64,000 nucleotides of DNA from IMG/VR virus record IMGVR_UViG_3300018962_000001, positions 1 to 64,000 of that record; one strand, 5' to 3'. The position numbers were made by a program, and so were the translations under genes. How positions within the stretch are numbered: position 1 is the first letter of the stretch; each line of letters begins with the position of its first letter. Below, in pieces: positions 3,525 to 43,745 of the stretch. Under the pieces are notes generated by a model. That model was not told the DNA's origin. It did not search any database and worked only from the letters and a program-made list of their open reading frames with translations.

Positions 3525-4949
3525 CTAGAGTCCGACAAAATCTTGGAGGGCGTCGGCAATGTCCTCGTCCAGGGGATCAATGGATTGAGCATCACCATCG
3601 AGATAATTGCAGAGGTAGCGAGTCGTGTCCATCCCGTGGTCATTTTCCTTGATCGGTACTTCTCGCACGGGCCGCCCTTCTCGACCTTGTGGATACACAT
3701 AGAGATCGAATTCCTGGGTGGTTTCCCACGGATGGTTCTTTTTCTCAAGCTCATCATCTTTCTCGACCAGGGCATAATCAAGAAAAAAGAGCCGGGGGCG
3801 CTTATCGCCCGCAACGCGCAGACGACCCTGCACTTTTTGAATCCCGATCTCAATGCGTTTGTCAGCGGGAATATTGGGAATGCCCTCGGCCTCCAGGGTT
3901 TCCCGGCCTTCGCGATCCCAGTCGCAGATAGTGGTTTCAATCGACTCGCCCTCGCTGAGCGCCACAATCAACTTTGCGTGATCGGACACGAGCCGCTGGC
4001 TCATGTAGATCTCGCGGTAGCGGTACGCACGGCCATCCGGGTCAATCGCCCACCACTGACAGACGAATGGGTGCATGAACCCAAAGTCGATGACGCGGAT
4101 ACGTCGCCACTCACGCGGAATCGGGTAGTCGCTGGGCAAGGTGTGGACACCACGTTGAAACTCATACACCGCCCCTTCGGCAGCGACCCATCGCCCATAG
4201 CGCAGGCGATCTTTGCGCACGCCAGTCAACCGATCCAACCGGGCGATGTAGAGTTCTCCGTAGGGCGTCCAGTGCTCCTCGATCTGATTCCACAAGCGCG
4301 GATTGTCGGTGTGCTGTGCGGCGATCATCCGACAGTCTCCGCGATCGCAGCGTTGTTTCAACCAGTGCGTGGGCGGACCGGGGTTACAATCGGCCATGAT
4401 TTGCTGATAGTCCGCCATCCCGTTGCGCAACCGGGTAGTCAGCGACTCCCAATCCTCGGCGGTCAGCTCGGTGGCTTCCTGGACGTAAATAAAATCGTAC
4501 TCGGTCGACATGATCTTGGTGGATTTGTCGATGCCGCCGACATTAAGCATGGAGCCGTTCGGATAGCGATAGCTCTGGCGAATATTGCGCTGCCGGGTGC
4601 CAGCCAGGGGATGGCCGGGTCCCAGCACATGATCTTCAAAGGTTTGGAGCGCGGATTCAGACACGGATTCGCGCGTTTTACGGATGATCAGCCCGCGCGA
4701 TCGGGGATAGCGACGCCCCAGCAACCAGTGGAGCTTTTCCAGGGCCGCACGACTCTTGCCGGTGCCTGCCGGACCACTTAAGAGGACTTCGGGATCACGC
4801 GATTCTTTGAGATCCCACGCCGCGCCATACGGGTGATACTGGCGGTGCTGCGCGCCCTCTTTACGCTTCTGCTCCAGCGTGGCCCGCGCCACATTGCGCG
4901 GCGTCCACCGGGGCAGGGCCGGTTGTTTGGGAGATGATCCGATCGCCAC
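3525..4949 (-). CDS. terL: phage terminase large subunit (PBSX/Terminase_6-like)
   Basis: Walker A GPAGTGKS, Walker B YVQEATE, DCNPG motif, nuclease motifs IDFGFMHP and ENDHGMDTTRY. Confidence 0.95.
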   Translation of the reverse strand: MAIGSSPKQPALPRWTPRNVARATLEQKRKEGAQHRQYHPYGAAWDLKESRDPEVLLSGPAGTGKSRAALEKLHWLLGRRYPRSRGLIIRKTRESVSESALQTFEDHVLGPGHPLAGTRQRNIRQSYRYPNGSMLNVGGIDKSTKIMSTEYDFIYVQEATELTAEDWESLTTRLRNGMADYQQIMADCNPGPPTHWLKQRCDRGDCRMIAAQHTDNPRLWNQIEEHWTPYGELYIARLDRLTGVRKDRLRYGRWVAAEGAVYEFQRGVHTLPSDYPIPREWRRIRVIDFGFMHPFVCQWWAIDPDGRAYRYREIYMSQRLVSDHAKLIVALSEGESIETTICDWDREGRETLEAEGIPNIPADKRIEIGIQKVQGRLRVAGDKRPRLFFLDYALVEKDDELEKKNHPWETTQEFDLYVYPQGREGRPVREVPIKENDHGMDTTRYLCNYLDGDAQSIDPLDEDIADALQDFVGL

Positions 4950-4974: not shown

Positions 4975-5535
4975 TTAAGGAAGGCTCGGCTCGTCTGCCT
5001 GGTCCCACGTGGGAGCCATCGGATCAGACGACCAATCAACGTCAATAATGTCACCGGCCATCGCGCCCTCAATGTCGGGCGGCACCTGGCGGGTGCGTAA
5101 GTAGAACTGGATCTGTTCGGGAGTCCACGTCGAGAAGTCATACTCCACGGTGATCGCCTGCGGCAAGTTCAGGCCCATCAGTCGGGCACGTTGCTCCTCG
5201 ATCTTCAACACCCGATCGATCGCGCCCAATTCGCCTTTCTTGGCGCGGACATAGACCGCCTTAATCATCTCGTCGAACCGGGCATTGACCAGTTCGCGGA
5301 GGTCATCAACGGTTTCCGCGCGGCGCTCCTCCATAATGCGCTGATACAGCCGCCGTGGGCCGGACTCATCGGCATACCCTAGCTGCTGCGCGATCTGGCT
5401 GAAGTTATAGCCCATCTTCCGCATCTCAAAGATACGATTGATTCGCGCATGCACCTCTACTTCGGCGGCACCGCGTGGACGACCCGGCTGGGGCAGGTGC
5501 GGGGGGGGATGGAGATCGTCGCTCATCGCGTTCAC
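4975..5535 (-). CDS. terS: terminase small subunit (HTH)
   Basis: HTH RKMGYNFSQIAQQLGY; AIDRVLKIEEQRARLMGL; immediately upstream of terL. Confidence 0.8.
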   Translation of the reverse strand: MNAMSDDLHPPPHLPQPGRPRGAAEVEVHARINRIFEMRKMGYNFSQIAQQLGYADESGPRRLYQRIMEERRAETVDDLRELVNARFDEMIKAVYVRAKKGELGAIDRVLKIEEQRARLMGLNLPQAITVEYDFSTWTPEQIQFYLRTRQVPPDIEGAMAGDIIDVDWSSDPMAPTWDQADEPSLP

Positions 5536-5949: not shown

Positions 5950-6045
5950 CGTGCCACCCTCTCCCGATTCCCGCCTGCGTGCTCAATGGGTTGACCTCAG
6001 CAGGTATCGTACCATATCCGACAAGGGTTGTCAGCCGGAGGGATT

Positions 6046-6270
6046 TCAATCGACAACATTTGGCTCGAACCGACCCTCGCGCCGCATCTGGATCTTCTCG
6101 CGAATCGTGCCCAGCATGATGGCTGCATGACGGTGTTTCTCGAACGCGATGCGATCTTCACGCGCCAGGAGGAGACGCGCACAGGTCATTTCCGCATCCT
6201 CCAGGGCGCGGATCTGCGCAAGACACGCATCCAATTCTCGAAGAATCAACTCATCAGCAACCGACAGCAT
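6046..6270 (-). CDS. hypothetical protein
   Basis: RBS gaaggagg before MLSVADE. Confidence 0.55.
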   Translation of the reverse strand: MLSVADELILRELDACLAQIRALEDAEMTCARLLLAREDRIAFEKHRHAAIMLGTIREKIQMRREGRFEPNVVD

Positions 6271-6322
6271 CACGATCCCTCCTTCAAACTGGCGCACATC
6301 TGCATCTTGATCGGGGTAAGCG

Positions 6323-6868
6323 CTACGGGGTCGATTCCATAAGCACCGGCCCGTTGCAATGCGTATCCAGATCGATCGCAAGCTGGACCACCATGTGCAG
6401 CCGGTCCAGCGGCTCCGGTTCGGCGGCGGCGGCGTTCAGTGCCCAATAGGCTCCAGTCGCGTAATCGCAGCCGCACCCGATCGCGGCAAACGGTCCCTTA
6501 AGCAGAACCACCGATCCGTTGCCATCGATTCGATACAACCGCCCATCACAGCCCAGGAGGACATTGCCGGGTCGTTGATTGCCCTCGGCCAATCCATCGC
6601 GCTCCTTCAGCGCGGCATGAATGGCCGGACTATAGGTGACGACCAGATATGAAAATACCGCGTCGGGATCAGCGGGCAGATCCAAGGGGACCACATAGCG
6701 CAGAAGCTGGTTCAGCAGGTAGGTGCCGCTCGATCCAACGACCGCCCGATCCATCCTCCAGATCTTCGGCATCGCGGTTTTATCCAGCTCCGATTGTCCC
6801 ACCACGCCATACGAATCGGCAGCGATCGTCACGCCGCCAGCATGCACTAATCCAGCAATAATCGTCAT
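6323..6868 (-). CDS. Ntn-hydrolase, HslV/proteasome beta-like peptidase
   Basis: N-terminal (M)T, AADS, PKIW, AIGCG: matches the Thr1/Asp17/Lys33/Ser129 pattern with Cys at the last position. Confidence 0.8.
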   Translation of the reverse strand: MTIIAGLVHAGGVTIAADSYGVVGQSELDKTAMPKIWRMDRAVVGSSGTYLLNQLLRYVVPLDLPADPDAVFSYLVVTYSPAIHAALKERDGLAEGNQRPGNVLLGCDGRLYRIDGNGSVVLLKGPFAAIGCGCDYATGAYWALNAAAAEPEPLDRLHMVVQLAIDLDTHCNGPVLMESTP

Positions 6869-6886
6869 CTCGTCATGTTCCTTGTG

Positions 6887-7249
6887 TTAGGCGCAGATCG
6901 CCTGCTCGATGGGGATTCCGCCAACATCGCGCAACGCTTCATCCACTGCGCCCTGCGCAACGAGCGGCAGACCCTGCCGTGATTGCGGATGCACGGCCCA
7001 CCCTCGCCCTGGAGCCGTTCCGGTCAGCAAATACACGCGATACAAGGTCACGGGCTGGCGGCGGCAGGACGGATCAGCCCAGGTTGCCAGGAGATACGTA
7101 TAGCCATCCCCCTGTGGTTCCCACTGCACAATCAGCAGCCATAACCGAGCGCCTGACGGGACTAAGGGTTCAAGATCCGTGAGCAACGGTCCACCTACTT
7201 CATAGGCAGCAGCTTCTGTTGCAACCATTGGATGCGGATCATGGAACAT
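6887..7249 (-). CDS. hypothetical protein
   Basis: ORF in operon orientation, RBS aaagga. Confidence 0.55.
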   Translation of the reverse strand: MFHDPHPMVATEAAAYEVGGPLLTDLEPLVPSGARLWLLIVQWEPQGDGYTYLLATWADPSCRRQPVTLYRVYLLTGTAPGRGWAVHPQSRQGLPLVAQGAVDEALRDVGGIPIEQAICA

Positions 7250-7333
7250 AGCAGATCCTTTCTGGATAGGATGGGGAGGAGCGGGGGGGGAAGGAGACGC
7301 GGCGTGCCGGGGGGAGCGACACGCCGCGTTCGA

Positions 7334-7609
7334 TTAAGACTCGCTGATCACGCGCTGCACTTCGTCAGCGACCGCCTTGGCGATCGTGCGCCGATCCTTG
7401 CCCGTGAGATCCGGGCTGAGCCGTCCGTGCATCTGGCGTGCGGCATCGATGGGGACGGCAATCTGATCGGCAAGCTCGCGCGTGACGCGCGTGCCTCCGG
7501 CCTGAATGGTATCGGCAACCCGCGTGAGATCGCCCTGCCGGGATTCCCGCGCGGCGTCGGCAGCCTCCGTCGATTCTTTCAACGTGTACTGGTGGGTAAT
7601 CGGAACCAT
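7334..7609 (-). CDS. hypothetical protein
   Basis: RBS aaggag before MVPITHQ. Confidence 0.6.
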   Translation of the reverse strand: MVPITHQYTLKESTEAADAARESRQGDLTRVADTIQAGGTRVTRELADQIAVPIDAARQMHGRLSPDLTGKDRRTIAKAVADEVQRVISES

Positions 7610-7624
7610 CGTGCGCTCCTTGCG

Positions 7625-7657
7625 GGTGTGCCCGGACGGGTTCCGTCCGGGCACACC
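7625..7657. terminator. 15-bp perfect hairpin
   Basis: ggtgtgcccggacgg-gtt-ccgtccgggcacacc between the 7662 stop and the next RBS. Confidence 0.5.
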
Positions 7658-7661
7658 ACGG

Positions 7662-7937
7662 TTAACTCGCTGCGCGTTGATCGGCCCGGCGCGGCTGGGA
7701 GTCACGGAGGATCTGCAAGCGCTGCTGCGTGCGCGCCGCCTGAACTTCCGCAACCTGCGTTTGCAGGTCCTGAAGGATCGACACCAGATCATCCGTATCA
7801 ACCACCGCCGTTGAGGCGGGACACCGAATTTCGGTGCGACCATCCTCGCGCATCAACACTTCCACTTTTCCAACCCCGCGAGACGACGGGTAGGTCGCCT
7901 CAAGCACCGCTCCATGTGCTGCAAACTGGTCCGCCAT
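7662..7937 (-). CDS. hypothetical protein
   Basis: RBS aaggag before MADQFAA. Confidence 0.6.
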   Translation of the reverse strand: MADQFAAHGAVLEATYPSSRGVGKVEVLMREDGRTEIRCPASTAVVDTDDLVSILQDLQTQVAEVQAARTQQRLQILRDSQPRRADQRAAS

Positions 7938-8004
7938 AGCGTCACTCCTTGCACAGATCAAGTAGAACAGATGTGCGTATTGTAGCACACCGTCAGTCAT
8001 CTGA

Positions 8005-8931
8005 TCAACCGATTCGGATACTCGGCGGCGGCTCGCGATAGGCAGCTTCGTACGCATCGGCATCGGTGCGGCTCGTTGCCACGCGACGGCCTGGACGCGG
8101 CAACTCGATCGCGGTGAGCGCTTCGCCCCAGCGATCTTGGGCCAGCAGCGGATTGAGAGCGGACGCCGCCATTTTGAATCGCCCACCCGCTCCCTTGCCA
8201 CGCTGCACACTGTTGCCATGAAATCCCCAGGAATCATCGCCCCAGCTATTCGTGCCAAACAGGATCGGCTCGGAATCAGTTCCGACTTTCCCAAGATCAA
8301 CCCCATCTAAACACACGCAGTGCCCACCGACCACCCGCCCCGTCGCATGCAGGAATCCTTCGGCGTCCGTTTCGAGCATCCCCTCGTACCAATCCACGCC
8401 GATAACGACGCAGCCGAGGCCACCAAGCAGATGGTCGATCACCGGCTGAATCTCCCAGGCCCAAGTATACTCGCCAACCAGGGGGATCGGCTCCTGGTGG
8501 CGTGGGGGAATAGCCCGCAGCACCTTCTGGCAGGCTTTCGCCGCTGCCAGCACCGACGTACCGAAATGCAGGTCACCCGCATCATTTTGCGGCCACACAT
8601 CATGTTTACACGACTCGGTATAGATAGCATAGGGATCTGGCCCGGTGGGGGTAAAGGCATACCATCGCCCGGTGCCCAGCATGAACGGGCCACAATCGAG
8701 CTTCCACCGCATCCCATGCCCAACGCAGGTCCCGCCGCGCTGGGTATAGGCGCGTGGAGGGCGTTGATAGTGACGACGACGGACGGCAAAGCGGGGGCGC
8801 TCCGTGCCAAAGGCTGCCGCAATCCGTCGCCGCATCGGAAACTGCTCCGATGCGGGATCGAATTCACGGACGCGCCCGAAGCGATCGACGAACTGCGGAT
8901 CAATCTGATAGGGCGCTGGCCGATCGGTCAT
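8005..8931 (-). CDS. papain-like cysteine peptidase (C1 family)
   Basis: Q-x5-C in QRGGTCVGHG, His in GGHCVCLDG, NSWG. Confidence 0.85.
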   Translation of the reverse strand: MTDRPAPYQIDPQFVDRFGRVREFDPASEQFPMRRRIAAAFGTERPRFAVRRRHYQRPPRAYTQRGGTCVGHGMRWKLDCGPFMLGTGRWYAFTPTGPDPYAIYTESCKHDVWPQNDAGDLHFGTSVLAAAKACQKVLRAIPPRHQEPIPLVGEYTWAWEIQPVIDHLLGGLGCVVIGVDWYEGMLETDAEGFLHATGRVVGGHCVCLDGVDLGKVGTDSEPILFGTNSWGDDSWGFHGNSVQRGKGAGGRFKMAASALNPLLAQDRWGEALTAIELPRPGRRVATSRTDADAYEAAYREPPPSIRIG

Positions 8932-9116
8932 CGTCGCCTCCCACCACTCGTCGGAGGTTTCACGGGTCGGGTATGGGACGGCTCCACGCCCGGATCGGGC
9001 CGGGTATTCCCGACACTATGGGGCGTTCGTGGTTCCTGTGGGCCGCGTTCGGCATTGCGCGGGGGAGTGCCACGGGGGGTCGGCACGCGCTGATTCGGAT
9101 TTTGTTGCTTTGCCAT
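8928..9116 (-). CDS. small Pro/Arg-rich protein
   Basis: RBS gggagg; ATGA-coupled to the peptidase. Confidence 0.55.
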   Translation of the reverse strand: MAKQQNPNQRVPTPRGTPPRNAERGPQEPRTPHSVGNTRPDPGVEPSHTRPVKPPTSGGRRR

Positions 9117-9153
9117 TGCATCCTCCCTCGGTAGGTAGAGATAGCATACCATG

Positions 9154-9624
9154 CTACAGGTCCAATGCGGTCAGGATCATGCGCGCGGGATCGTCCCGGA
9201 GATCCGATCCTGCCACCCGAACGACGCGATAGCCGTGGGATTCGAGATCGGCATCGCGCTGCTGATCGCGCCGCCGCTGGGTCAGCTGATGATGCTGCGA
9301 CCCATCGATCTCCAGGACCACCCGCCCCACCAGAAAATCAACACGGTAGGGACCAACTTGCGCCTGCCAGCGATAGGCGATCCCCGAACTGTTCAGCACT
9401 GCCGCTGTTAAGACTTCCCCGTGCGAAATCTTGCCGCGCGGATAGCCCTGCTGCCGCTGCTGTGCCGCGAGCTGCTGCCGGGCCGCGCGAATCACCAGCG
9501 CGCGGAGCGCCGTGCTGGACCATCCCCGCCGGATCTGATTCGCCATGCGCGTGACATCCTGGGCCGTCAGCGACCGACCACGATGTTTCCCGCAGCGGCA
9601 GTCAGGAGCGCAGTGCTGCGACAT
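9154..9624 (-). CDS. DUF559/Vsr-like endonuclease domain protein
   Basis: QAQVGPYRVDF..VLEIDGSQHH..RDADLESHGYRVVR; start position uncertain. Confidence 0.8.
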   Translation of the reverse strand: MSQHCAPDCRCGKHRGRSLTAQDVTRMANQIRRGWSSTALRALVIRAARQQLAAQQRQQGYPRGKISHGEVLTAAVLNSSGIAYRWQAQVGPYRVDFLVGRVVLEIDGSQHHQLTQRRRDQQRDADLESHGYRVVRVAGSDLRDDPARMILTALDL

Positions 9625-33462: not shown

Positions 33463-34587
33463 ATGCCCGAACAGTTAGTGGACATCGTTATCAGCTTCGA
33501 CACGACCGGATCGATGTATCCGGCGCTGACGCAGGTGCGGCGGCGGGTGCGTGAACTGGTGGAGCGGCTCTTTCGGGACATCCCCGGAATCCGTATCGGA
33601 ATCACCGCGCACGGTGACTATTGTGACGCGCGCAGCGCCTATGTGACGCGCCACCTCCATCTTTCGGATGATCCCGCGCATATCGTGCGTTTTGTGCAGG
33701 ACGTAGCGGCCACGCACGGCGGCGACTCGCCCGAATGCTACGAGCTGGTGCTCCACGAGGCCCGGAGCTTCTTGTGGCGACCGGGAGCGACGCGCGTCCT
33801 GGTCTTAATCGGGGACGACGTGCCACATGGTCCCGCGCAGAACCCTTCACGTCTTAACTGGCGCGACGAGGTAACCGCGCTCACCGATCTTGGGGTAACC
33901 GTTTATGGTGTCCAGGCGCTGGGTCGTGGCTACGCTACCTCGTTTTACCGGGAACTGGCGGAACGGTCGGGCGGGTATCATCTGACGCTCGATCAATTTG
34001 CGACCTTAACCGACTTGCTGCTGGGCATCGGCTATCGCCAGGCGGGCGCGGATCAGCTAGGCCAGTACGTCACCGAAGTGCAAACCAGTGGCCGCATGAA
34101 TCGGGAGTTGGCACGGGCCTTTGGCACGATGACGGGCGCGACGATTTCGTTTACGGAGCCGCGTGCTCGTCGTGATCGTGGCGTGTCGTTGGATGCACTG
34201 CCGGTTGATCCCGCATCCCTGGTTCCGGTCCATCCGTCGCGCTTCCAGGTGCTGGAGGTGGATCACACCACCGATATTAAGACCTTTGTGACCGATCAAG
34301 GACTGGGCTTCCGGGTGGGACGGGGCTTCTACGAGTTTACCAAGCCCGAAACGATTCAGTCTCGCAAAGAGGTCGTGCTTCAGCGCAAAGATGGATCGGG
34401 AGAAATGTTTACCGGCCCAGCGGCACGATCGCTCATCGGGTTGCCCCACGGGACCAATGCCCGCCTGCGGCCCACGGCCCTGGAGGAATATCGCGTCTTT
34501 GTGCAATCCACCTCCGCCAATCGGAAGTTGATCGGCGGCACCGGATTTCTCTACGAGGTCGAGGATTGGGATCGGAGTGCGGCATGA
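33463..34587 (+). CDS. von Willebrand factor A domain protein
   Basis: DIVISFDTTGSM (MIDAS DxTxS), GDYCD, GGDSPECYE, LIGDDVPH. Confidence 0.88.
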   Translation: MPEQLVDIVISFDTTGSMYPALTQVRRRVRELVERLFRDIPGIRIGITAHGDYCDARSAYVTRHLHLSDDPAHIVRFVQDVAATHGGDSPECYELVLHEARSFLWRPGATRVLVLIGDDVPHGPAQNPSRLNWRDEVTALTDLGVTVYGVQALGRGYATSFYRELAERSGGYHLTLDQFATLTDLLLGIGYRQAGADQLGQYVTEVQTSGRMNRELARAFGTMTGATISFTEPRARRDRGVSLDALPVDPASLVPVHPSRFQVLEVDHTTDIKTFVTDQGLGFRVGRGFYEFTKPETIQSRKEVVLQRKDGSGEMFTGPAARSLIGLPHGTNARLRPTALEEYRVFVQSTSANRKLIGGTGFLYEVEDWDRSAA

Positions 34588-35094: not shown

Positions 35095-35400
35095 ATGCAG
35101 CAGGCAGAAGGGACGACGATGGATCAAACGCTGGAGGGAGTGCTCGCGGCGCGGCAGGCAATCTTAGTCGGCCTGATCGCCCAGCGCGATGATGGAACCA
35201 AGCCGCTGGCCGAGCGGATTGCAGCGGCGCGTGATGCCTTTGGGATTCTCAAGGGAGATTATTACCAGGGGCGCGTTTCATACGAAACGGCGGCGGCGGC
35301 GGCGCGCATCCACCTGGAACTCGGCAATCAGGCCCGGACGGCACGCGGCGCGCGGCCTGTCCGCATTACCCCACTGACGATTTCGATGCAGATGCGCTAG
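35095..35400 (+). CDS. hypothetical protein
   Basis: RBS aaggagg. Confidence 0.6.
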   Translation: MQQAEGTTMDQTLEGVLAARQAILVGLIAQRDDGTKPLAERIAAARDAFGILKGDYYQGRVSYETAAAAARIHLELGNQARTARGARPVRITPLTISMQMR

Positions 35401-36148
35401 ACAGGAGCGCACGACCCGCAGCGGTCGGCGAGGGACCGAGGACGTTCCAAAACAGGACGCGCCCGGCCCCTCGTCGTTGGCGGCAGATCTGCCAGGCTTT
35501 GCGGTCGTAATTGGGGCAGGAATCAAAGGGCACCGCGATCTTCAATTCTTTCTCAAACGGCAACGCATACTCGATTACCGTGGCGCGACCGGGATCATCC
35601 ACATGCCGTCCGACCTGCACGGCATAAAAGCGGGCAGCGGGCATACCGGCTTGCAGTCCCCGCGTTAACACCCCCGATCCCGCCGCCGACCAGACCTCAT
35701 CAAACGGGCCATAGGTCTCCCAGACCTGCCGCGCCGCCCGTGCAATCGCGGCGTGCGCCCCCGCTCCGGCCCCGCCGAACTCCATATAGTGCGCGCCCTG
35801 CTCCTTGCAGTAGAGCTGGCATTTGGCCTGCACATGACTCAAGTAGCCATGTGGAACCTGGAAGATCCGCGCGCCGAGGGCTTTGGCTTCGAGCGTGCGC
35901 GGATGTGGCTCCTTGCGCTTTGCCACAAAGATCGTCGCGCGGCGGCCTGTGATCCGCGCACAGGCCGCCAGCGCCAGCTGTGCGCCGCCATACGCGGGCG
36001 AGGCATAGGCCACTTCCGCGTAGCGGGTAAACAACTGGATGAGATACCGCCCTTTGGTTCCCCCCGGCAGGCGATCGTCGCGAACCACGGCAATGCCCTG
36101 ATGATCCTCGACGATCGGCACGGTCTCATAGATCGCAGCAGTGGTCAT
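35366..36148 (-). CDS. PLP-dependent enzyme, fold type II (ACC deaminase/cysteine synthase-like)
   Basis: VRDDRLPGGTKGR (candidate Schiff-base Lys), AAGSGVLTRG phosphate loop; ATGA-coupled to the MTase. Confidence 0.8.
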   Translation of the reverse strand: MTTAAIYETVPIVEDHQGIAVVRDDRLPGGTKGRYLIQLFTRYAEVAYASPAYGGAQLALAACARITGRRATIFVAKRKEPHPRTLEAKALGARIFQVPHGYLSHVQAKCQLYCKEQGAHYMEFGGAGAGAHAAIARAARQVWETYGPFDEVWSAAGSGVLTRGLQAGMPAARFYAVQVGRHVDDPGRATVIEYALPFEKELKIAVPFDSCPNYDRKAWQICRQRRGAGRVLFWNVLGPSPTAAGRALLSSASASKSSVG

Positions 36149-38277
36149 AATTCCTCGCCATAGCGTCCTTCCGGCACCACCGGCGCGGCATGCCACGCTC
36201 CGGCGGACTGAATCGCGGACGGAATCGGATCAGCCACCGTGGGATCGGCAGCGGAGTCATCATAGGTGCCGGTCGGCACCTCGGCTCCGGTTTCCTCATC
36301 CACTTCGGTATCGTCCTCAATGTCGCCAAACTCGACCGGCCCGACCCACTCGGTCGCCTTGCGCCAATCGCCCTTGATGAAAATGAGGACGTTCTGATGA
36401 CTCTTACCCAACTTCCTCGCTTTTTCAAACTGACGCCCCACGCGCACGGCCAGCGATCCGATCGGCGTGACAAAGATGGCCTCATTATACAAGCGTGCCC
36501 CGGCATCTTCAAACGCCTGGATCGTGTGGCTCACAAAGTTGTGGTAGTGGCCGTCTTTATCGCGGACATCGCCAACCACAAAACACGCAAAGCGATCGGG
36601 CCGCAGCCGGGCGACCGCATGCGCGATAATTTCTCGGTAGATCGTGTGAAAATCCGCATAACTCATATTAGAAATATCACGGGGATCGTCCGAATAGACC
36701 TCCAGATCGGCATAGGGCGGACAACTGAAAATCAGATCAGCCTCAAAGTCCGGCCCCACCAGATCCGGCAACGTCCGCGAGTCGCCGCAATGCCAGATCG
36801 GCGTCGGGTCATCCGGGCGCAGGATCGATTCGATCTGGGATCGATTCGCGGCAACCTGCTCCGGGCGTAAATCAATGCCGGTATAGTGACGGCCCAGGTA
36901 GCCTGCGACGATTCCACGCACCGATCCCCCGGCAAAGGGATCAAGAATCTGCCCACCTTCCGCACAGAACCAGCGATACGCCAGCTCGGTCAGCACCGGG
37001 TCGAAGACGGACGTGCCGGTTTGCGACAAGCCCTCACCGGTCTGTTGGTTTATGTAATGGTCCCTTTGGAATTCCTCGGTCGTGAGCGGGCGGCCCAACT
37101 CCCGCTCTTTTTCGCGCTTTTGCTTATAGTAGCTCGGATCACGGCCCGAATCCGAGGTAAACAGCACGCCCGATGTATCGCGGGGAGCCTGTTTGCCGCT
37201 GGTCTTCATCCAGGCAGAATTCGGGCCGCCGCCGCCGCCGGGCGTGATCGCCTTTTCGCGTCGCCGGGCCTCACGATCGGTCCCCTCGCCTTCGGCCATG
37301 CGTGCCGAAAGTCCTCCGCCCCCGGCAGCGAGGCGATTGGACCCAGAAATGCCCTTGCCGTTGCCAATCGTATGTTCGCCCTTCATCAGATCTTGCCCGA
37401 AGGTGCGGCCATAGGACCGGGCCGCCCGTGCGCCTTGGGGCGAGTGCGCGTCCTCCCCGTCGCTGTCCGGCGGCGCATCAGCCTCTGCGCCGTCATGGTC
37501 CAATCGAGCCGCATACGCCTTCCGATCCCGGCGATACAGCTCCGATTCGCCACTGAGATTCTGGAGATTCGGGCCGCGCCCCAGCTCGCTCTGGATACCG
37601 AGTTTTAGCCAGGCTTTCTTGCGATCCGACCAATATCCTTGGCGGGCGTCGAGCACCGAGAAGGGCGGTACGCCAAACCGATCCGCCAGGGTTGCGCGCG
37701 CGGCTTCGGTGCTGGGCGTCGGAGCGGTCGCTGAGGAATCCGATCCAGAGTCATCCTGCGATTCCAGGTGCTCCAGCATATCGATCAAGGCCCGATCTTC
37801 GGCGGCCAGCTGGTCGTACAGCTCGGTATATTGTTCCTCGTCGCGAACCGCCAACGCGGCGATCGGGTCGAACGTCATCAAGGCCAGACGTTCTTCTTCC
37901 TGGCTGAGATGGACATAGATGACATCGATGAGCGGCAACCGGCGGCGCTGCGCGAGACTGACCCGGAGATGGCCGTCCACGATAAAGCCGGTTACCTCAT
38001 TGACGATGATCGGGGCGATAATCCCGATCCGGTTCATAATTTCCGTGAGGGCATCTTGTTGAATGCGAGTATGGATGCGCCAGTTTTCCGGGTGATTCAG
38101 CAGCGTATCCGGCGGTACCTTGACGAGCTTCACGATCTTGCTTTCCCACAGGGCGGCAAAATCGTCCGGGTCCGCCTGTTGGTGGGCCAGAATCTCGTCG
38201 ACGCGCTCCTCGCTGAGATCATGGATCTCAATCACGGGATGATCCGTGTCGTCCGATTCGGGGGCATGCGTGGTCAT
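36145..38277 (-). CDS. ParB/Srx N-terminal domain fused to SAM-dependent amino-methyltransferase-fold domain
   Basis: HPENWRIH..IVDGHLRV (ParB-like); ILDPFAGGSVRG (motif I); FSCPPYADLE (motif IV); RBS aaggag. Confidence 0.88.
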   Translation of the reverse strand: MTTHAPESDDTDHPVIEIHDLSEERVDEILAHQQADPDDFAALWESKIVKLVKVPPDTLLNHPENWRIHTRIQQDALTEIMNRIGIIAPIIVNEVTGFIVDGHLRVSLAQRRRLPLIDVIYVHLSQEEERLALMTFDPIAALAVRDEEQYTELYDQLAAEDRALIDMLEHLESQDDSGSDSSATAPTPSTEAARATLADRFGVPPFSVLDARQGYWSDRKKAWLKLGIQSELGRGPNLQNLSGESELYRRDRKAYAARLDHDGAEADAPPDSDGEDAHSPQGARAARSYGRTFGQDLMKGEHTIGNGKGISGSNRLAAGGGGLSARMAEGEGTDREARRREKAITPGGGGGPNSAWMKTSGKQAPRDTSGVLFTSDSGRDPSYYKQKREKERELGRPLTTEEFQRDHYINQQTGEGLSQTGTSVFDPVLTELAYRWFCAEGGQILDPFAGGSVRGIVAGYLGRHYTGIDLRPEQVAANRSQIESILRPDDPTPIWHCGDSRTLPDLVGPDFEADLIFSCPPYADLEVYSDDPRDISNMSYADFHTIYREIIAHAVARLRPDRFACFVVGDVRDKDGHYHNFVSHTIQAFEDAGARLYNEAIFVTPIGSLAVRVGRQFEKARKLGKSHQNVLIFIKGDWRKATEWVGPVEFGDIEDDTEVDEETGAEVPTGTYDDSAADPTVADPIPSAIQSAGAWHAAPVVPEGRYGEEL

Positions 38278-38287
38278 GGAACACTCC

Positions 38288-38674
38288 TTAGCGATCGAAG
38301 GCAGGCAAGACACCGGGCGTCGTTGGCGAGTCTGGAGGAAAGCGTCGCAGAAGATCGGCCAGCATCCCCTGAGTCGCGGCAAGCTGCGCTCCCAGCTCGG
38401 TCAGCTGGTCCTGCATCGCATCATCACCATCTCGACTTTGGGGAGAATCTTTGAACCGAAACCACCGCGCCAGAACGATAAACGCGCCGACCTGATGATA
38501 TTCGGACGCGAGGTTTTCAAAGGTCGTGGTGAGAAAATCAAGCCACCAGGGGGCAAGGTGCGGTGGGTAGCCCTCCTGCTGCCAATAGGTCAACATCGCA
38601 TGGGTGGCCCAGGTCAGGAGCCACCCACCGAGATACATCCAGCCTAACGAGTACTCATGCCAGAGGCGTTTCAT
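38288..38674 (-). CDS. small membrane protein (DUF6766-like)
   Basis: TTFENLASEYHQVGAFIVLARWFRFKDSPQSRD; two TM segments. Confidence 0.65.
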   Translation of the reverse strand: MKRLWHEYSLGWMYLGGWLLTWATHAMLTYWQQEGYPPHLAPWWLDFLTTTFENLASEYHQVGAFIVLARWFRFKDSPQSRDGDDAMQDQLTELGAQLAATQGMLADLLRRFPPDSPTTPGVLPAFDR

Positions 38675-38983: not shown

Positions 38984-39802
38984 TCAAGGGTCCGGTTCGG
39001 CACGTGGCTCCGGTCCTTTCTGGTCGGCAGAATCATCGGGAACCGGACGCACCGCCAGGCCCGGCGTCGCCCAGGCGCGCACTTCGTCCTCAACCGGCTC
39101 CCCACGGAGCCGAAGAATCCCGGTGAACTTCGCGCCATCCGTGGTGCGCAGCTGGGTAACGGTCAGCTCCAAGCGAATCTCGGCTCCGGCTTTGGTTAAT
39201 CCGACCACCGCGATGGGGCGGCCCAGAATAGCGCTTTCGCCCGTGAGTAGATACCGCCGAACCCCCCGCTCATGGGCTACACGATAGCGCTCCGGCATCA
39301 AGCAGGTTAGCGGCTCGCCGATCATCTCACGTGCGCTATAGCCAAACAAGAGTTCAGCCCCTGGCGACCAGGATCGGACTCGCCCCTCGCGGTCCATACT
39401 GATCACGCCATCCAGGGCCGGATCAACCGCGCCTTGGCGGCGGCGGCGGAGTTCTTGGAACAGGGCGACTCGTTCCAGACGATCCAGCAGGGTCGATGCG
39501 ATCATGGCGATGCCAATCAGGGTAAACCCAAACGCAATGAGGTAGCGCACCTCGATCGGCGACGGCGGCATAAACAAGAGCACTACGCCAATGACCAGGA
39601 CAATCAGGGTCACCGTGAAGCGGAACAGGACATTGCGGAGATTTCCGATCGCAACAATGCGCTTCCCGCCATTCACACGGGCGCGCTCAATCAAGAGGAA
39701 GTCCGTCACAGCGCACCACAACCCCCAAGCATTCAGTGCAACGCCCAGGATCGCAGCCACGATCTGGAGTACCTCCGGCCACGGGATCAGCTCAGGTCTC
39801 AT
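38984..39802 (-). CDS. 3-TM holin-like protein fused to a FixL-like PAS domain
   Basis: three hydrophobic segments then DGVISMDREGRVRSWSPGAELLFGYSAREMIG..LMPERYRVAH..FTGILR; RBS gaggag. Confidence 0.88.
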   Translation of the reverse strand: MRPELIPWPEVLQIVAAILGVALNAWGLWCAVTDFLLIERARVNGGKRIVAIGNLRNVLFRFTVTLIVLVIGVVLLFMPPSPIEVRYLIAFGFTLIGIAMIASTLLDRLERVALFQELRRRRQGAVDPALDGVISMDREGRVRSWSPGAELLFGYSAREMIGEPLTCLMPERYRVAHERGVRRYLLTGESAILGRPIAVVGLTKAGAEIRLELTVTQLRTTDGAKFTGILRLRGEPVEDEVRAWATPGLAVRPVPDDSADQKGPEPRAEPDP

Positions 39803-40001
39803 GATCGGACTCCTCATGGTACCGCGCGTGGAGGGCGACCTGGCGCTCCACTTCCAACGCTTCTAACCGCACGGCTTGTTCTTCTTGCTGCTGGCGAAGA
39901 CGGCGCTGGCTCCGCCAGGCATCGAGGGCTTGGGGATCGGCGTGCCGTGGGGTGATGGGCTGCCCCAAGATCCAGCCTAACAACCGTAGCAACCGTAACA
40001 T
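39792..40001 (-). CDS. small basic coiled-coil protein, copy 2
   Basis: resembles 40777-40989; overlaps the PAS gene start. Confidence 0.6.
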   Translation of the reverse strand: MLRLLRLLGWILGQPITPRHADPQALDAWRSQRRLRQQQEEQAVRLEALEVERQVALHARYHEESDHET

Positions 40002-41529: not shown

Positions 41530-42585
41530 CTAAGGAATCTCCTGCGCGGGGGGGAGGGCAGGAACAGTGATCGGCGGACTGGCCGGAGCCTGTTCGAGTC
41601 GATGATGGACCACGGCGCGGCACCAGCGCTGGTAGAACAGGTCAAACAGTTCGCGCGCGTCCGGCGCATACGCCTTGGATCGATCGAGCCAGGTACGGAG
41701 CGTCGCACGGGCCTGCGTGCGGGCGATCTCGACCATCTGGCCGCGGAGCGTGTCGACAATCTGGGCGGCGATCAGATCGGGAGTACGGGCAGCAAGGTCG
41801 GCTAACGCTTGCTCAATCCGCGCACGCAAGTCATCGGGAAACACCGGACTCGTCTGACCGCCGGTATGCGCGCGGTACCGATCGATCCACCACGGGTTCC
41901 CAAACTGCCACAGGGCATCAGGAAACTTCGCCCACAGCACGCCCGCAATATGATCGTCGCTCACCGGCGACACCGCCGGAAGCTGGGCAATGCGAGTCTG
42001 TGCGTCGGCGGCGAGATCCTTGGCATAGTTGGCCCGCTCCACGGCATAGCTGGCCTGCTTCGCGGCGTCCGTTGCCAGCGTTCGGGCAGTGGTGGCAAGC
42101 CCCCGCGCCTCGGCGTCAATCGCCGGGCCAGGCGCGGGGGCTGACCCTCCTCCGCCCCCGATAGCCTCAACAAAGTGCGGCACCGACTCAAAATGACGAG
42201 CCCCAGCGGGATCGGTAAAGGCCATCTGGAGTCCCCAACCAGGCTGGTACGAAAGTTGGCCGCTTTCTTGGCGCGGGGTGACAAACTGTGCCCCCGCAGC
42301 ACTTTGACGCACCACATACCAGCCAAACTGGTTGTTGTCTTTCGGCGCATGGGCCTGGAAGAAAAACCCACTCCAAAAGATCGCGCCATCTGCCGATCGG
42401 TATGCGGCCTGCTGGTGCCCATACGTGGCATAGGAGGATGGTGATCCAATTCCCGCCTGCGCCGGACGCGGACGGTCGCCGTGGATCGCCTGAAGCTCCT
42501 CGGCAAAGCGGAGCATGGCATACTCCGCGGGATCGATCGCGGTAAATCCCGCTGGGGTATCTAACTGGAGGGTTGGAGCACTCAT
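41530..42585 (-). CDS. hypothetical protein in lysis operon
   Basis: ATGA-coupled to endolysin; Gly/Ala/Pro linker. Confidence 0.7.
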   Translation of the reverse strand: MSAPTLQLDTPAGFTAIDPAEYAMLRFAEELQAIHGDRPRPAQAGIGSPSSYATYGHQQAAYRSADGAIFWSGFFFQAHAPKDNNQFGWYVVRQSAAGAQFVTPRQESGQLSYQPGWGLQMAFTDPAGARHFESVPHFVEAIGGGGGSAPAPGPAIDAEARGLATTARTLATDAAKQASYAVERANYAKDLAADAQTRIAQLPAVSPVSDDHIAGVLWAKFPDALWQFGNPWWIDRYRAHTGGQTSPVFPDDLRARIEQALADLAARTPDLIAAQIVDTLRGQMVEIARTQARATLRTWLDRSKAYAPDARELFDLFYQRWCRAVVHHRLEQAPASPPITVPALPPAQEIP

Positions 42586-43745
42586 GATCCACCTTCCGGC
42601 CAGAAAACGCGCGCACCCGTCGCTGCGGTCCAGGCAATAATGCAGTGTGCAAAGACCTGATAGGTGGTCGAATCAATCAGGACTTCCGGGGCGGTTGCCG
42701 GGCCGGGATTGCGTCCGGCATCGACCAGCTCGCGCCACAAGCTCGCAATCCCCCACTCGGCAATATACGGAGCCTCCGTGCCCCACAGGCCGTGATAATC
42801 AGCCATATCATCGCTCCAATCGGTAATCCAGCGGCGCATGGTCAGGGCATCGGCGAATGGATTATTGGCCCCATCGCCGACCGGACTCCAGATGCACCGC
42901 ACGGTCGCAAGTTCATCATTGCCACTTGGGAAGTAGTCAGGTTTCTGCTCCAACCGATCCAGCACATCGTCCAGCGAATCCAGCCAGGAGTGAAAGACCG
43001 GCCAGCCCTCGACGGTGGCACGGACTCGACCGGGATTCATCGGCGTGCGCACATTTCCCCAATTCAGGGTGCGCGTCGCCACTCCCTCGGTGCCAAACGA
43101 CGATTCCTTCCCAATCAACGCCAGGATCGGACCCGGTTTGATTTTGCGCCGGAGAACGCGCGCGTAGCCATCCTGCGCATCCTCTGGCGACAGGATGGGC
43201 CGGAGCGCCCGAACCCACGGACTCAGGGGAATGTCGGGTGGCCCCCGAAGCTCATAGGGCGTCTGAAAACACAGATCGCGGAAGCTTGCCCAAAATGGGA
43301 AGTCGGTCGGATCGGTACGCGGCCCATTCAGCGAGGCAGGGCGACCCGCGGCGATGTCTTGGTGGCGCAGCAATCGCGGAAGCCGCAACGTTTGGCAGTC
43401 TCCCCGAATGACCTGGAGGCAGCGGGCGAGGTGTTCCGGGGACCAGCGTTCCCCCTTGCGATGCCCGATTTCCCAACCGACCCACTGGCTATTCCAGTGA
43501 TTACTCCAGGAATCAGACGCCGCGAGGCGTCCCCACCCCGCATGGTAGGCCACATGGCTCAGGGGGACCATCTCATACACGATGCCCTTGCGGCGCGGGA
43601 TGTACTTATGAATGCTGACGTTGGTGGTCAGGGCGGCGAGATCGCCCGGCTCGTGGCCCTCGGTGGTATGCACAATCCCACCGAGGGTGACCTTGCGCGG
43701 CCCACTGGTCGGTCCCCGTTTCGAGGTATTCACGCGGTAGTTCAT
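42582..43745 (-). CDS. endolysin: Amidase_2 + glucosaminidase/lysozyme-like domain + LGFP-like C-terminus
   Basis: IVHTTEG, SIHKYI, AYHAG, VGWEI (Zn amidase); GKESSFG..NWGNVR..VFHSWLDS. Confidence 0.88.
   Translation of the reverse strand: MNYRVNTSKRGPTSGPRKVTLGGIVHTTEGHEPGDLAALTTNVSIHKYIPRRKGIVYEMVPLSHVAYHAGWGRLAASDSWSNHWNSQWVGWEIGHRKGERWSPEHLARCLQVIRGDCQTLRLPRLLRHQDIAAGRPASLNGPRTDPTDFPFWASFRDLCFQTPYELRGPPDIPLSPWVRALRPILSPEDAQDGYARVLRRKIKPGPILALIGKESSFGTEGVATRTLNWGNVRTPMNPGRVRATVEGWPVFHSWLDSLDDVLDRLEQKPDYFPSGNDELATVRCIWSPVGDGANNPFADALTMRRWITDWSDDMADYHGLWGTEAPYIAEWGIASLWRELVDAGRNPGPATAPEVLIDSTTYQVFAHCIIAWTAATGARVFWPEGGS

Follow-up and report, generated by a model that had tools for sequence, protein, structure and literature searches.

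Known systems closest to the ParB-transferase and PLP gene pair

Phage ParB-N6/N4 DNA methyltransferase fusions have been surveyed (PMC12704722), and the B. cereus ParB-methylase BCE_0392 has been cited (PMC5512222). In these proteins a ParB/Srx-like N-terminus is fused to a PF01555-type SAM domain, and the genes lie in phages and prophages, often beside the terminase. We analyzed a 64,000-nucleotide stretch of IMG/VR virus record IMGVR_UViG_3300018962_000001 (positions 1 to 64,000, hereafter the window), which carries a gene of this general type, ORF A, followed by a gene for a small vitamin-B6 (PLP) enzyme, ORF B. In comparison with the described fusions, motif I precedes motif IV in ORF A, motif IV is CPPY, and there is a dedicated partner, a PLP enzyme or in other phages an AdoMetDC, that none of these papers mentions.

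Other systems share some features with this locus or its relatives. In SpeD and SpeE (AdoMetDC plus spermidine synthase, a methyltransferase-fold aminopropyltransferase) a decarboxylase gene sits next to a methyltransferase-fold enzyme with an acidic residue in the Gly-rich cofactor loop, as in a sister clade of ORF A described below. However, the acceptor here would be DNA (ParB domain, PPY motif) and not a polyamine, and the window copy has a SAM-type pocket and a PLP partner instead of SpeD. In CmoA/CmoX/CmoY of Synechococcus phage S-B43 (PMC12783734), a methyltransferase homologue transfers a non-methyl group, a partner enzyme acts on SAM, an ATP-dependent amide ligase extends the adduct, and ParB-domain proteins are often nearby. 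CmoX is a C5-cytosine enzyme that uses carboxy-SAM, and no PLP enzyme is involved; ORF A is of the amino-methyltransferase type and not the C5 type, and CmoA was not searched for in this study. That paper reports finding no N6-A or N4-C counterpart.

In nocardicin biosynthesis, SAM-dependent 3-amino-3-carboxypropyl transfer by Nat is followed by NocJ, an ACC-deaminase-like PLP enzyme that acts at the alpha-carbon of that group. The substrate is a small molecule and not DNA, NocJ epimerises, whereas the reaction of ORF B is unknown, and identity of NocJ to ORF B is only 21%. The thymidine hypermodification pathways of phages M6 and ViI (PMC8989533, PMC5889632) are post-replicative, include PLP-dependent tailoring and give cationic bases. 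Those pathways start from 5-hmdU made by a ThyA homologue, followed by a kinase and aGPT-Pplase. The PLP enzymes of these phages are of other folds. Finally, the carboxyspermidine dehydrogenase/decarboxylase route and the dcSAM route to spermidine (PMC12979288) show two convergent orders of events, in which decarboxylation precedes transfer, or a carboxy-aminopropyl unit is transferred first and then decarboxylated by a PLP enzyme. This is an analogy of logic only, since the enzymes are unrelated and the acceptors are polyamines.

Structure of ORF A and ORF B

First, the gene arrangement was examined, and the observation made in the first-pass annotation, a ParB-methyltransferase gene overlapping a fold-type-II PLP enzyme gene by ATGA, was found to be correct. 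ORF A runs from 38277 to 36145 on the minus strand (710 aa plus stop). It starts at an ATG 6 nt after a GGAG ribosome-binding site (38287-38284, minus strand) that directly follows the TAA of the upstream gene. ORF B runs from 36148 to 35366 on the minus strand (260 aa plus stop), and its start codon overlaps the stop codon of ORF A in an ATGA at 36148-36145, with GAGGA 3 nt upstream (36156-36152). The pair ends a minus-strand operon that also holds an amidase gene (42585-43745), small membrane proteins, a nuclease-like gene and a PAS-domain protein, and it converges on plus-strand genes. The whole 204,685-bp virus genome has no ThyA or ThyX homologue (no PF00303 and no PF02511, whereas positive controls were detected), and a 5-hmdU-type pathway was rejected on this basis; a kinase or aGPT-Pplase homologue was not sought. 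The M6 and ViI PLP enzymes cited in the annotation belong to an unrelated pathway that is absent here.

The N-terminal part of ORF A (37561-38142, minus strand, residues 46-239) is a ParB/Srx-like domain, which matched PHROG 15396 (1e-15), PHROG 620 (4e-13) and PHROG 8071. It includes DGHLR (37963-37977, residues 101-105) and the conserved segment PFSVLD..W..RK..W..LGI.SE.GR (37576-37665). Pfam ParB_N was not reported for the window copy at E <= 0.01, but homologues carry PF02195. The next part (37021-37560, minus strand, residues 240-419) is a Gly-rich, low-complexity linker, which makes this copy about 200 aa longer than typical relatives. The class-I transferase domain (36298-37020, minus strand, residues 420-660) contains motif X TSVFDPVL (36982-37014), motif I DPFAGGSVRG (36913-36942, with G451 and R454) and motif IV FSCPPY (36712-36729, residues 517-522), and relatives have a domain-insertion hot spot near residue 492. 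The C-terminal tail (36148-36297, minus strand, residues 661-710) is acidic and not conserved.

The transferase domain passed the Pfam N6_N4_Mtase (PF01555) cut-off (41.7 bits against 26.7, in two stretches). Motif I, with the FxGxG-type SAM loop DPFAGGS at residues 446-452, was present in 107 of 110 relatives. However, two features of N6/N4 amino-DNA methyltransferases were absent. The residue before PPY is Cys, so that motif IV is F[S/T]-C-PPY and not a canonical D/N/S-PPY, which corrects the annotation; this Cys aligns with the S of SPPY in 2ZIE. In addition, motif I (446) precedes motif IV (517), so that the order is not the permuted beta-class order, and the two Pfam/2ZIE stretches aligned in swapped order. 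Methyl transfer and SAH release were not assayed. The acidic Gly-loop residue (GGGD/E) of SpeE-like dcSAM-dependent aminopropyltransferases was also absent from the window copy, which has G451.

ORF B passed the Pfam PALP (PF00291) cut-off (39.6 bits against 35) and matched PHROG 7093. The Schiff-base lysine K32 in GGTK (codon at 36053-36055) was invariant in 40 homologues and aligned with GGNK of the ACC-deaminase homologue 1J0A, and the phosphate loop AAGSGVL (35666-35686) aligned with AAGSGG; NYDRKAW lies at 35492-35512. The structure model had pLDDT 95.6 and a complete PLP fold core, and Foldseek gave probability 1.00 and TM 0.6-0.7 to many family members. However, ORF B is a minimal enzyme and not a full-length two-domain enzyme of about 300 aa or more. 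Family members are typically 230-250 aa, and TM scores normalised by target length were only 0.35-0.6. The top Swiss-Prot structural neighbours were a Thermotoga putative ACC deaminase, plant D-cysteine desulfhydrase/ACC deaminase and enteric DcyD, StDCyD entries were among the top PDB hits, and NocJ was also among the neighbours. At the sequence level there was no NCBIfam equivalog hit and identity was 15-21%; Y214-D215 is nearly invariant, but its equivalence to the catalytic Tyr and following Glu (ACC deaminase) or Thr (D-cysteine desulfhydrase) rests on our reading of motifs and not on a superposition, which leaves membership at the sequence level undecided. The PLP family is basic, with a median pI of 9.4 against 5.1 for the transferase domain.

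Linkage, fusions and a decarboxylase-linked sister clade

Absence of co-occurrence in other genomes had been set out in the annotation as an outcome that would count against its proposal. We therefore examined other loci, and co-occurrence was found. From the PLP side, the transferase was adjacent in 79 of 80 viral loci overall, in 74 of 74 viral loci with enough flank, and in 67 of 76 prophage loci; the other nine prophage loci had the PLP gene without the transferase within 4 kb. The two are also naturally fused in at least two topologies, in which the PLP domain is joined end to end or inserted at one hot spot inside the transferase domain. The pairing is not chance. A single-sequence scan with the window's transferase domain found no viral loci, but an alignment-based scan did. 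In contrast to the PLP side, only 29 of 74 transferase-centred loci had the PLP gene, which is gained and lost across the transferase tree without any change in the transferase. The PLP partner is optional and dispensable for most family members. No residues separated PLP-linked from partner-less transferases, the largest frequency difference being 0.47, at variable sites. A third gene always present with the pair was not found; recurrent clusters were antisense shadows or terminase-side genes of related phages. A reading of ORF B as an independent metabolic gene was rejected because of the linkage and the fusions.

In a sister clade of ORF A, the same slot holds an S-adenosylmethionine decarboxylase. 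In Croceibacter phage P2559S, gp66 (same family, FSCPPY) overlaps gp67 AdoMetDC. Of 77 AdoMetDC-centred viral loci, 70 had the transferase directly upstream and none had the PLP gene. Six of six of these decarboxylase homologues passed Pfam AdoMet_dc, and the P2559S AdoMetDC is experimentally genuine (PMC9992855). The substitutions F425L, G451D, R454F, Y465F, W495Y and F617M are fixed between the two clades, which are separated by a branch with 100% support. The D was present in 100% of copies of the AdoMetDC-linked clade, and an acidic residue in the Gly loop is the dcAdoMet motif of aminopropyltransferases (PMC11107197).

Further tailoring domains were found in some relatives, namely an Amidoligase_2 fusion, an insertion of PLP plus an Asp/Asn-hydroxylase-like domain, and a GGACT neighbour, although these associations rest on three, one and one cases, respectively. 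The extra C-terminal domain of one protein (P0165) was modelled by AlphaFold2 on a three-sequence alignment, which gave an unusable model (pLDDT 37), but its amidoligase identity was shown transitively. Pfam and PHROG scans of the roughly 200-aa inserts of two other proteins (P0202 and P0175) and of linker regions found nothing, and the insert of P0202 is not a PLP domain. Full-text literature searches found no description of the pairing of PLP or AdoMetDC genes with ParB-transferases.

Interpretation and rival explanations

The annotation proposed that the transferase adds the aminocarboxypropyl part of SAM to A or C, that the PLP enzyme then processes it, and that ParB could couple this to packaging, and this interpretation was partly supported. 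Our analysis demonstrates the coupling of the two genes here and their linkage or fusion in hundreds of phages and prophages, the intact SAM-binding motif I and invariant F[S/T]CPPY catalytic motif of ORF A, the PLP lysine and confidently predicted ACC-deaminase-like fold of ORF B, and the sister clade with a genuine SAM decarboxylase and a dcSAM-type pocket. The remainder is inference, which we favor only tentatively. In this view, the pair modifies the phage's own DNA after replication, and the family alkylates an exocyclic amino group of A or C with the propyl arm of the sulfonium cofactor rather than with its methyl. The decarboxylase-linked clade would use dcSAM and give an N-(3-aminopropyl) base. 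The window's clade keeps G451 and R454, so in this model it binds carboxylate-bearing SAM and would give an N-(3-amino-3-carboxypropyl) base plus MTA. ORF B, held on the DNA by its positive charge and by contact with ORF A, would then act at the alpha-carbon of the DNA-tethered amino acid, either by decarboxylation, which would converge on the same cationic aminopropyl base, or by epimerisation, as in NocJ. The ParB domain would load or slide the enzyme on DNA, in most relatives close to the time of packaging, and the product would shield the DNA from restriction. Coupling to packaging fits relatives in which the module abuts the terminase, but in this genome TerL lies about 31 kb away.

The decarboxylase displacement with its pocket covariation, the amidoligase and hydroxylase fusions, the basic PLP protein and the NocJ neighbour give this reading independent support, and SAM, SAH or a transferred acp group are the only amino acids available in such a reaction. 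However, no chemistry was measured, and the prior for proteins that pass the Pfam DNA-methylase model is plain methylation. As PLP-linked and partner-less transferases could not be told apart, the whole clade would have to be acp transferases. Putrescine N-methyltransferase and spermidine synthase show that one family can hold both methyl and propyl transferases, so homology to the dcSAM clade does not fix the group transferred. We know of no fold-type-II PLP decarboxylase. A complex prediction of the transferase domain plus ORF B with SAM and PLP scored 0.00 and gave no answer, which is not evidence either way. The transferase domain was not modelled with SAM and flipped-base DNA, and no natural insertion-type fusion was modelled. 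A broader reading, which is possible but less likely than not, is that a very large, undescribed family of phage ParB-linked, methyltransferase-fold enzymes writes N-(3-amino-3-carboxypropyl) or N-(3-aminopropyl) groups onto adenine or cytosine in DNA by two convergent routes, with a SAM decarboxylase acting first or a DNA-bound ACC-deaminase-like PLP enzyme acting afterwards, and with an amidoligase or a hydroxylase added in some lineages.

Among the alternatives, the least unlikely is that ORF A is an ordinary, probably low-specificity, N6-adenine or N4-cytosine DNA methyltransferase, and that ORF B removes the inhibitory by-product, for example by gamma-elimination on SAH or homocysteine, or otherwise balances SAM metabolism during mass methylation. 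ORF A matched the Pfam, PHROG and NCBIfam methylase models, the transferase works without the PLP gene in most loci and shows no sequence change when the partner is present, SAH is an amino acid, and ACC-deaminase-type enzymes handle vinylglycine-type intermediates. However, this does not explain why a SAM decarboxylase fills the same slot with a matching pocket change in its transferase, the amidoligase or hydroxylase fusions, or the invariant Cys in place of the canonical D/N/S of motif IV, and it gives no reason for a small-molecule enzyme to be strongly basic or inserted inside the transferase fold. It is also unlikely, and somewhat more so, that ORF B acts before transfer, by converting free or ORF A-bound SAM into an analogue that keeps its carboxylate, such as the alpha-epimer or a keto form, or by forming a PLP-vinylglycine electrophile from SAM, which ORF A then delivers to the base. 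The slot equivalence with AdoMetDC, which acts on free SAM, the precedent of CmoA making Cx-SAM for CmoX (PMC12783734), the tight fusions, which would suit channelling of a scarce cofactor, and the retention of R454, so that the cofactor keeps its carboxylate, agree with this. In contrast, partner-less transferases have an identical pocket, so no special cofactor seems to be required, and the positive charge of ORF B fits DNA better than SAM. A related possibility, that the PLP enzyme is a SAM decarboxylase acting before transfer, was disfavored because the window clade keeps the carboxylate-type pocket (G451, R454).

Two further readings are very unlikely. In one, ORF B makes a PLP-aminoacrylate from serine, O-acetylserine or cysteine, and the base flipped out by ORF A attacks it and becomes a beta-substituted alanine, as plant cysteine-synthase-like enzymes do with free heterocycles. 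O-acetylserine sulfhydrylases were the best sequence matches in the PDB, and beta-replacement is the commonest fold-type-II chemistry, but the SAM motifs of ORF A stay invariant in PLP-linked copies, the decarboxylase displacement points to SAM's own amino-acid arm, and the structural neighbours favor the ACC-deaminase group over O-acetylserine sulfhydrylases. In the other, ORF B is a non-catalytic or regulatory PLP-fold scaffold that binds ORF A or DNA, as CysK binds partner proteins. The truncated fold of about 235-260 aa instead of 300 or more, the basic charge, and a position inside the transferase domain where other methyltransferase classes carry a target-recognition domain agree with this. 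However, the Schiff-base Lys, the RDD..GGTK motif, the SG phosphate loop and the Y..K motif are invariant or nearly so across more than 1000 homologues, and the model has a complete PLP fold core.

If the chemistry holds, this would be a new class of DNA base modification, an N-linked amino-acid or aminopropyl side chain on A or C, made directly from SAM by enzymes found in thousands of phages and prophages of cyanobacteria, alphaproteobacteria and other bacteria. Four cultured phages, Microcystis phage Mae-JY30, Pseudanabaena phage Pam4 and Erythrobacter phages R6L and ZS04, are of the PLP type and one, Croceibacter phage P2559S, is of the decarboxylase type, and there are many lysogens. The module would also offer compact enzymes that install amine or carboxyl handles on DNA. 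Phage speD is called the commonest phage "polyamine" gene (PMC9992855). If the broader reading is true, many phage speD genes now read as polyamine auxiliary metabolic genes would in fact be cofactor suppliers for DNA modification, and where speD sits behind this transferase, it would be part of an anti-restriction pathway.

Sequence features of ORF A and ORF B

The positions of the two minus-strand genes were first examined, and they lay exactly where the first-pass annotation had placed them. ORF A runs 38277..36145 and encodes 710 aa, and its ATG follows a GGAG that sits directly after the TAA of the upstream gene. ORF B runs 36148..35366 and encodes 260 aa, and its ATG overlaps the TGA of ORF A as ATGA, with GAGGA just upstream. 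ORF A passed the Pfam N6_N4_Mtase cut-off, its N-terminus matched PHROG ParB families, and it carries DPFAGGS at residues 446-452 and FSCPPY at residues 517-522 (36712-36729). This motif IV, F[S/T]-C-PPY, was invariant across all three clades, with Cys replacing the D/N/S of amino-methyltransferases, and the role of this Cys is unexplained. ORF B passed the Pfam PALP cut-off and matched PHROG 7093.

The virus genome of 204,685 bp, of which the window is the first 64 kb, was rated complete by CheckV. The pair closes a minus-strand operon that also holds an amidase, small membrane proteins, a nuclease-like gene and a membrane-anchored PAS-domain protein (38987-39817, minus strand), which is two genes upstream of ORF A, while a DUF6766-like membrane protein lies at 38291-38674. 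The converging plus-strand gene set includes a von Willebrand factor A domain protein (33463-34587), and its last ORF (35095-35400) overlaps the 3' end of ORF B by 35 nt. No ThyA, ThyX, AdoMetDC or Amidoligase_2 homologue was found in the genome, and ORF B is its only PALP protein. The same genome has two further N6_N4_Mtase-type genes outside the window, at 121118-121822 and 116666-116854, one of which is a strong match at 156 bits.

Next, we analyzed the ORF B family. More than 1000 homologues exist, nearly all of them metagenomic and typically 230-250 aa long. In an alignment of 40 homologues, R23-D24-D25, G29-G30-T31-K32, Q57, R78, H82, R84, S158-G159, K217, W219 and F233-W234-N235 were invariant. 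The AlphaFold2 model of ORF B was confident (pLDDT 95.6), and its structural neighbours were fold-type-II enzymes at TM 0.6-0.7 and 12-21% identity. The ACC-deaminase/D-cysteine-desulfhydrase group led the Swiss-Prot list, and the nocardicin C-9' epimerase NocJ was at rank 7. A profile alignment to the ACC-deaminase homologue 1J0A put GGTK on its GGNK lysine motif and AAGSG on its phosphate loop. A prediction of the complex of the transferase domain with ORF B gave no answer, and one further structure prediction, of the extra C-terminal domain of the relative P0165, gave no usable model. The ORF B family was uniformly basic, with a median pI of 9.4, in contrast with the acidic transferase domain (median pI 5.1).

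Linkage and fusion of the transferase and the PLP enzyme

The loci around the PLP gene were then investigated. Starting from the PLP protein, 79 of 80 viral loci carried the ORF A-type transferase, as did 74 of the 74 loci with at least 900 nt of upstream sequence, and the order was almost always ParB, then transferase, then PLP, on one strand and a few tens of bases apart. Loci were sampled as the best 80 per scan, so the counts describe the nearer relatives. In bacterial genome contigs, mostly prophages of Alphaproteobacteria, the transferase was present in 67 of 76 loci and directly adjacent in 64. However, nine loci had the PLP-family gene without a detectable transferase within 4 kb, namely L248 and L326, which are from Vampirovibrionales MAGs and whose copies are longer (302-342 aa), and L261, L292, L295, L298, L308, L324 and L325.

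The two proteins were also found to be naturally fused in two ways. In the proteins P0165, P0137, P0223, P0171 and P0148 they are joined end to end as ParB-transferase-PLP, whereas in Pam4 gp70, P0208, P0239, P0235, P0146, P0197, P0224 and P0135 the PLP domain is inserted inside the transferase fold, near the position of window residue 492. In Microcystis phage Mae-JY30 the three parts are three overlapping genes. In Erythrobacter phage R6L (KY006853), a gene annotated as PAPS reductase (395-1438 of the locus) lies about 1.4 kb upstream of the fused ParB-transferase-PLP gene (gp1). A weak, sub-threshold match to DUF3109 lies between the transferase and PLP domains of two end-to-end fusions (P0171, residues 335-540, and P0218, residues 330-540). 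Inserts of about 200 aa and of unknown family sit at the same hot spot of the transferase domain in P0202 (residues 335-540) and P0175 (residues 140-350), but these are not PLP domains and have no Pfam or PHROG match.

Starting from the transferase, however, only 29 of 74 loci with enough flank held the PLP gene. On a tree of 110 transferase domains, the partner-less copies (no partner within 4-5 kb) were scattered among the PLP-linked ones; the tree needs 15 changes, of which at least 4 are forced by well-supported branches, and some sister pairs differ only in having or lacking the partner. No alignment column separated the two groups, and both keep DPFAGGS and F[S/T]CPPY. The transferase therefore does the same thing with or without ORF B. 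In ordinary-sized relatives the module sits directly upstream of the terminase genes, whether or not the PLP gene is present, and eight of ten downstream large ORFs are TerL. In this genome TerL (Terminase_3/6N) is at 3528-4949 on the minus strand, next to an ORF (4978-5535, minus strand) homologous to the small ORF found between the transferase and TerL in relatives and to Pam4 gp72. The module is therefore about 31 kb from the packaging genes in this genome.

We also examined additional tailoring domains in relatives. P0165, P0223 and P0241 add a C-terminal domain of roughly 290 aa after the PLP domain, giving four-domain natural fusions of ParB, transferase, PLP and Amidoligase_2 (L165, the locus of this fusion at 6001-9366, has a GpA-type terminase and a portal gene just downstream). 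A language-model atlas pointed to phage Amidoligase_2 for this domain, and a profile of the domain found 322 homologues, of which four of the ten scanned passed the Pfam Amidoligase_2 cut-off. The 1234-aa protein P0222 (2035-5739 of locus L164) carries, at the insertion hot spot, a PLP domain (hhalign probability 94%) followed by an Asp/Asn beta-hydroxylase-like domain. A separate ParB_N gene lies upstream of it, DUF6011 and GGACT genes lie downstream, the GGACT gene being two genes downstream, and a Pyr_excise gene is nearby. All of these enzyme types work on carboxyl, amino or side-chain carbons of amino-acid-like groups. These cases are few.

A sister clade linked to S-adenosylmethionine decarboxylase

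A tblastn search of the transferase domain against cultured phages found 27 records. One was Croceibacter phage P2559S (NC_018276: 42666-44307; our locus L166), in which the homologue gp66 overlaps a downstream gene annotated as S-adenosylmethionine decarboxylase (AdoMetDC). Scanning viral contigs with that decarboxylase gave 80 loci (L167-L246 in our series). In 73 of them, and in 70 of the 77 with enough flank, the F[S/T]CPPY transferase lay directly upstream behind a ParB domain, and none of them carried the PLP gene. All six decarboxylase homologues that were scanned passed Pfam AdoMet_dc. The P2559S protein has been shown by others to be a genuine AdoMetDC, which restores spermidine in E. 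coli lacking speD (PMC9992855). That paper reads phage speD as a polyamine gene, and it is treated in the literature as a polyamine auxiliary metabolic gene, but the neighbouring transferase is not mentioned there.

The decarboxylase-linked transferases formed one side of a branch with 100% support and differed from the PLP-linked and partner-less copies at six fixed positions. Three of these lie in the motifs that hold the amino-acid end of the cofactor: F425L in motif X, and G451D and R454F in motif I, giving DPFAGGSVRG against D[C/P]FAGD[T/S]VFG. An acidic residue in this glycine loop is the dcAdoMet-binding signature of aminopropyltransferases (PMC11107197), and gaining an Asp and losing an Arg is what one expects when the cofactor loses its carboxylate. 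That clade therefore most likely uses dcSAM, and the only known use of dcSAM is as an aminopropyl donor. In contrast, the window's clade keeps G451 and R454, so it is inferred to bind a cofactor that still has its carboxylate.

Interpretation of the module and comparison with other systems

Fusions of ParB and methyltransferase domains in phages are known, and their role is described as unclear (PMC12704722; PMC5512222). It has been suggested that ParB directs modification enzymes during packaging (cited in PMC8256090). The CmoA/CmoX/CmoY system shows that a methyltransferase homologue can transfer a non-methyl group that a ligase then extends, and its authors report finding no N6-A or N4-C counterpart (PMC12783734). 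The paper on Erythrobacter phage R6L annotates its fused gene simply as a CcrM-like methylase (PMC5463345). Full-text literature searches found no description of the PLP or AdoMetDC pairing, and we regard the module as a probable form of phage DNA hypermodification that differs from those described in this pairing.

The linkage, the fusions and the decarboxylase pairing were observed in the sequences, whereas the chemistry is inferred and nothing has been measured chemically. A PLP enzyme needs an alpha-amino acid, and in a SAM-transferase reaction the only candidates are SAM, SAH, or the aminocarboxypropyl (acp) arm of SAM once it has been moved to the acceptor. The pieces fit best if the family transfers the propyl arm, and we tentatively prefer this reading, although it falls short of being more likely than not. 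The proposal in the first-pass annotation that an aminocarboxypropyl group is added to the base and then processed by the PLP enzyme was supported in part. Plain methylation, with ORF B as a helper enzyme directed at SAH or SAM, appears unlikely, and action of ORF B on SAM before transfer somewhat less likely again, but neither is excluded. Against the preferred reading, we know of no fold-type-II decarboxylase, one protein family can hold both methyl and propyl transferases, and nine prophage loci have the PLP gene alone.

In the preferred reading, the decarboxylase-linked clade would transfer aminopropyl from dcSAM, while the window's clade would transfer aminocarboxypropyl from SAM, and the basic, often fused ORF B would then act on the DNA-tethered amino acid. 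Epimerisation has the closest precedent in NocJ, which works on an acp group placed by a SAM-dependent transferase. Decarboxylation, on the other hand, would bring both module types to the same cationic product, which mirrors the two known routes to spermidine.
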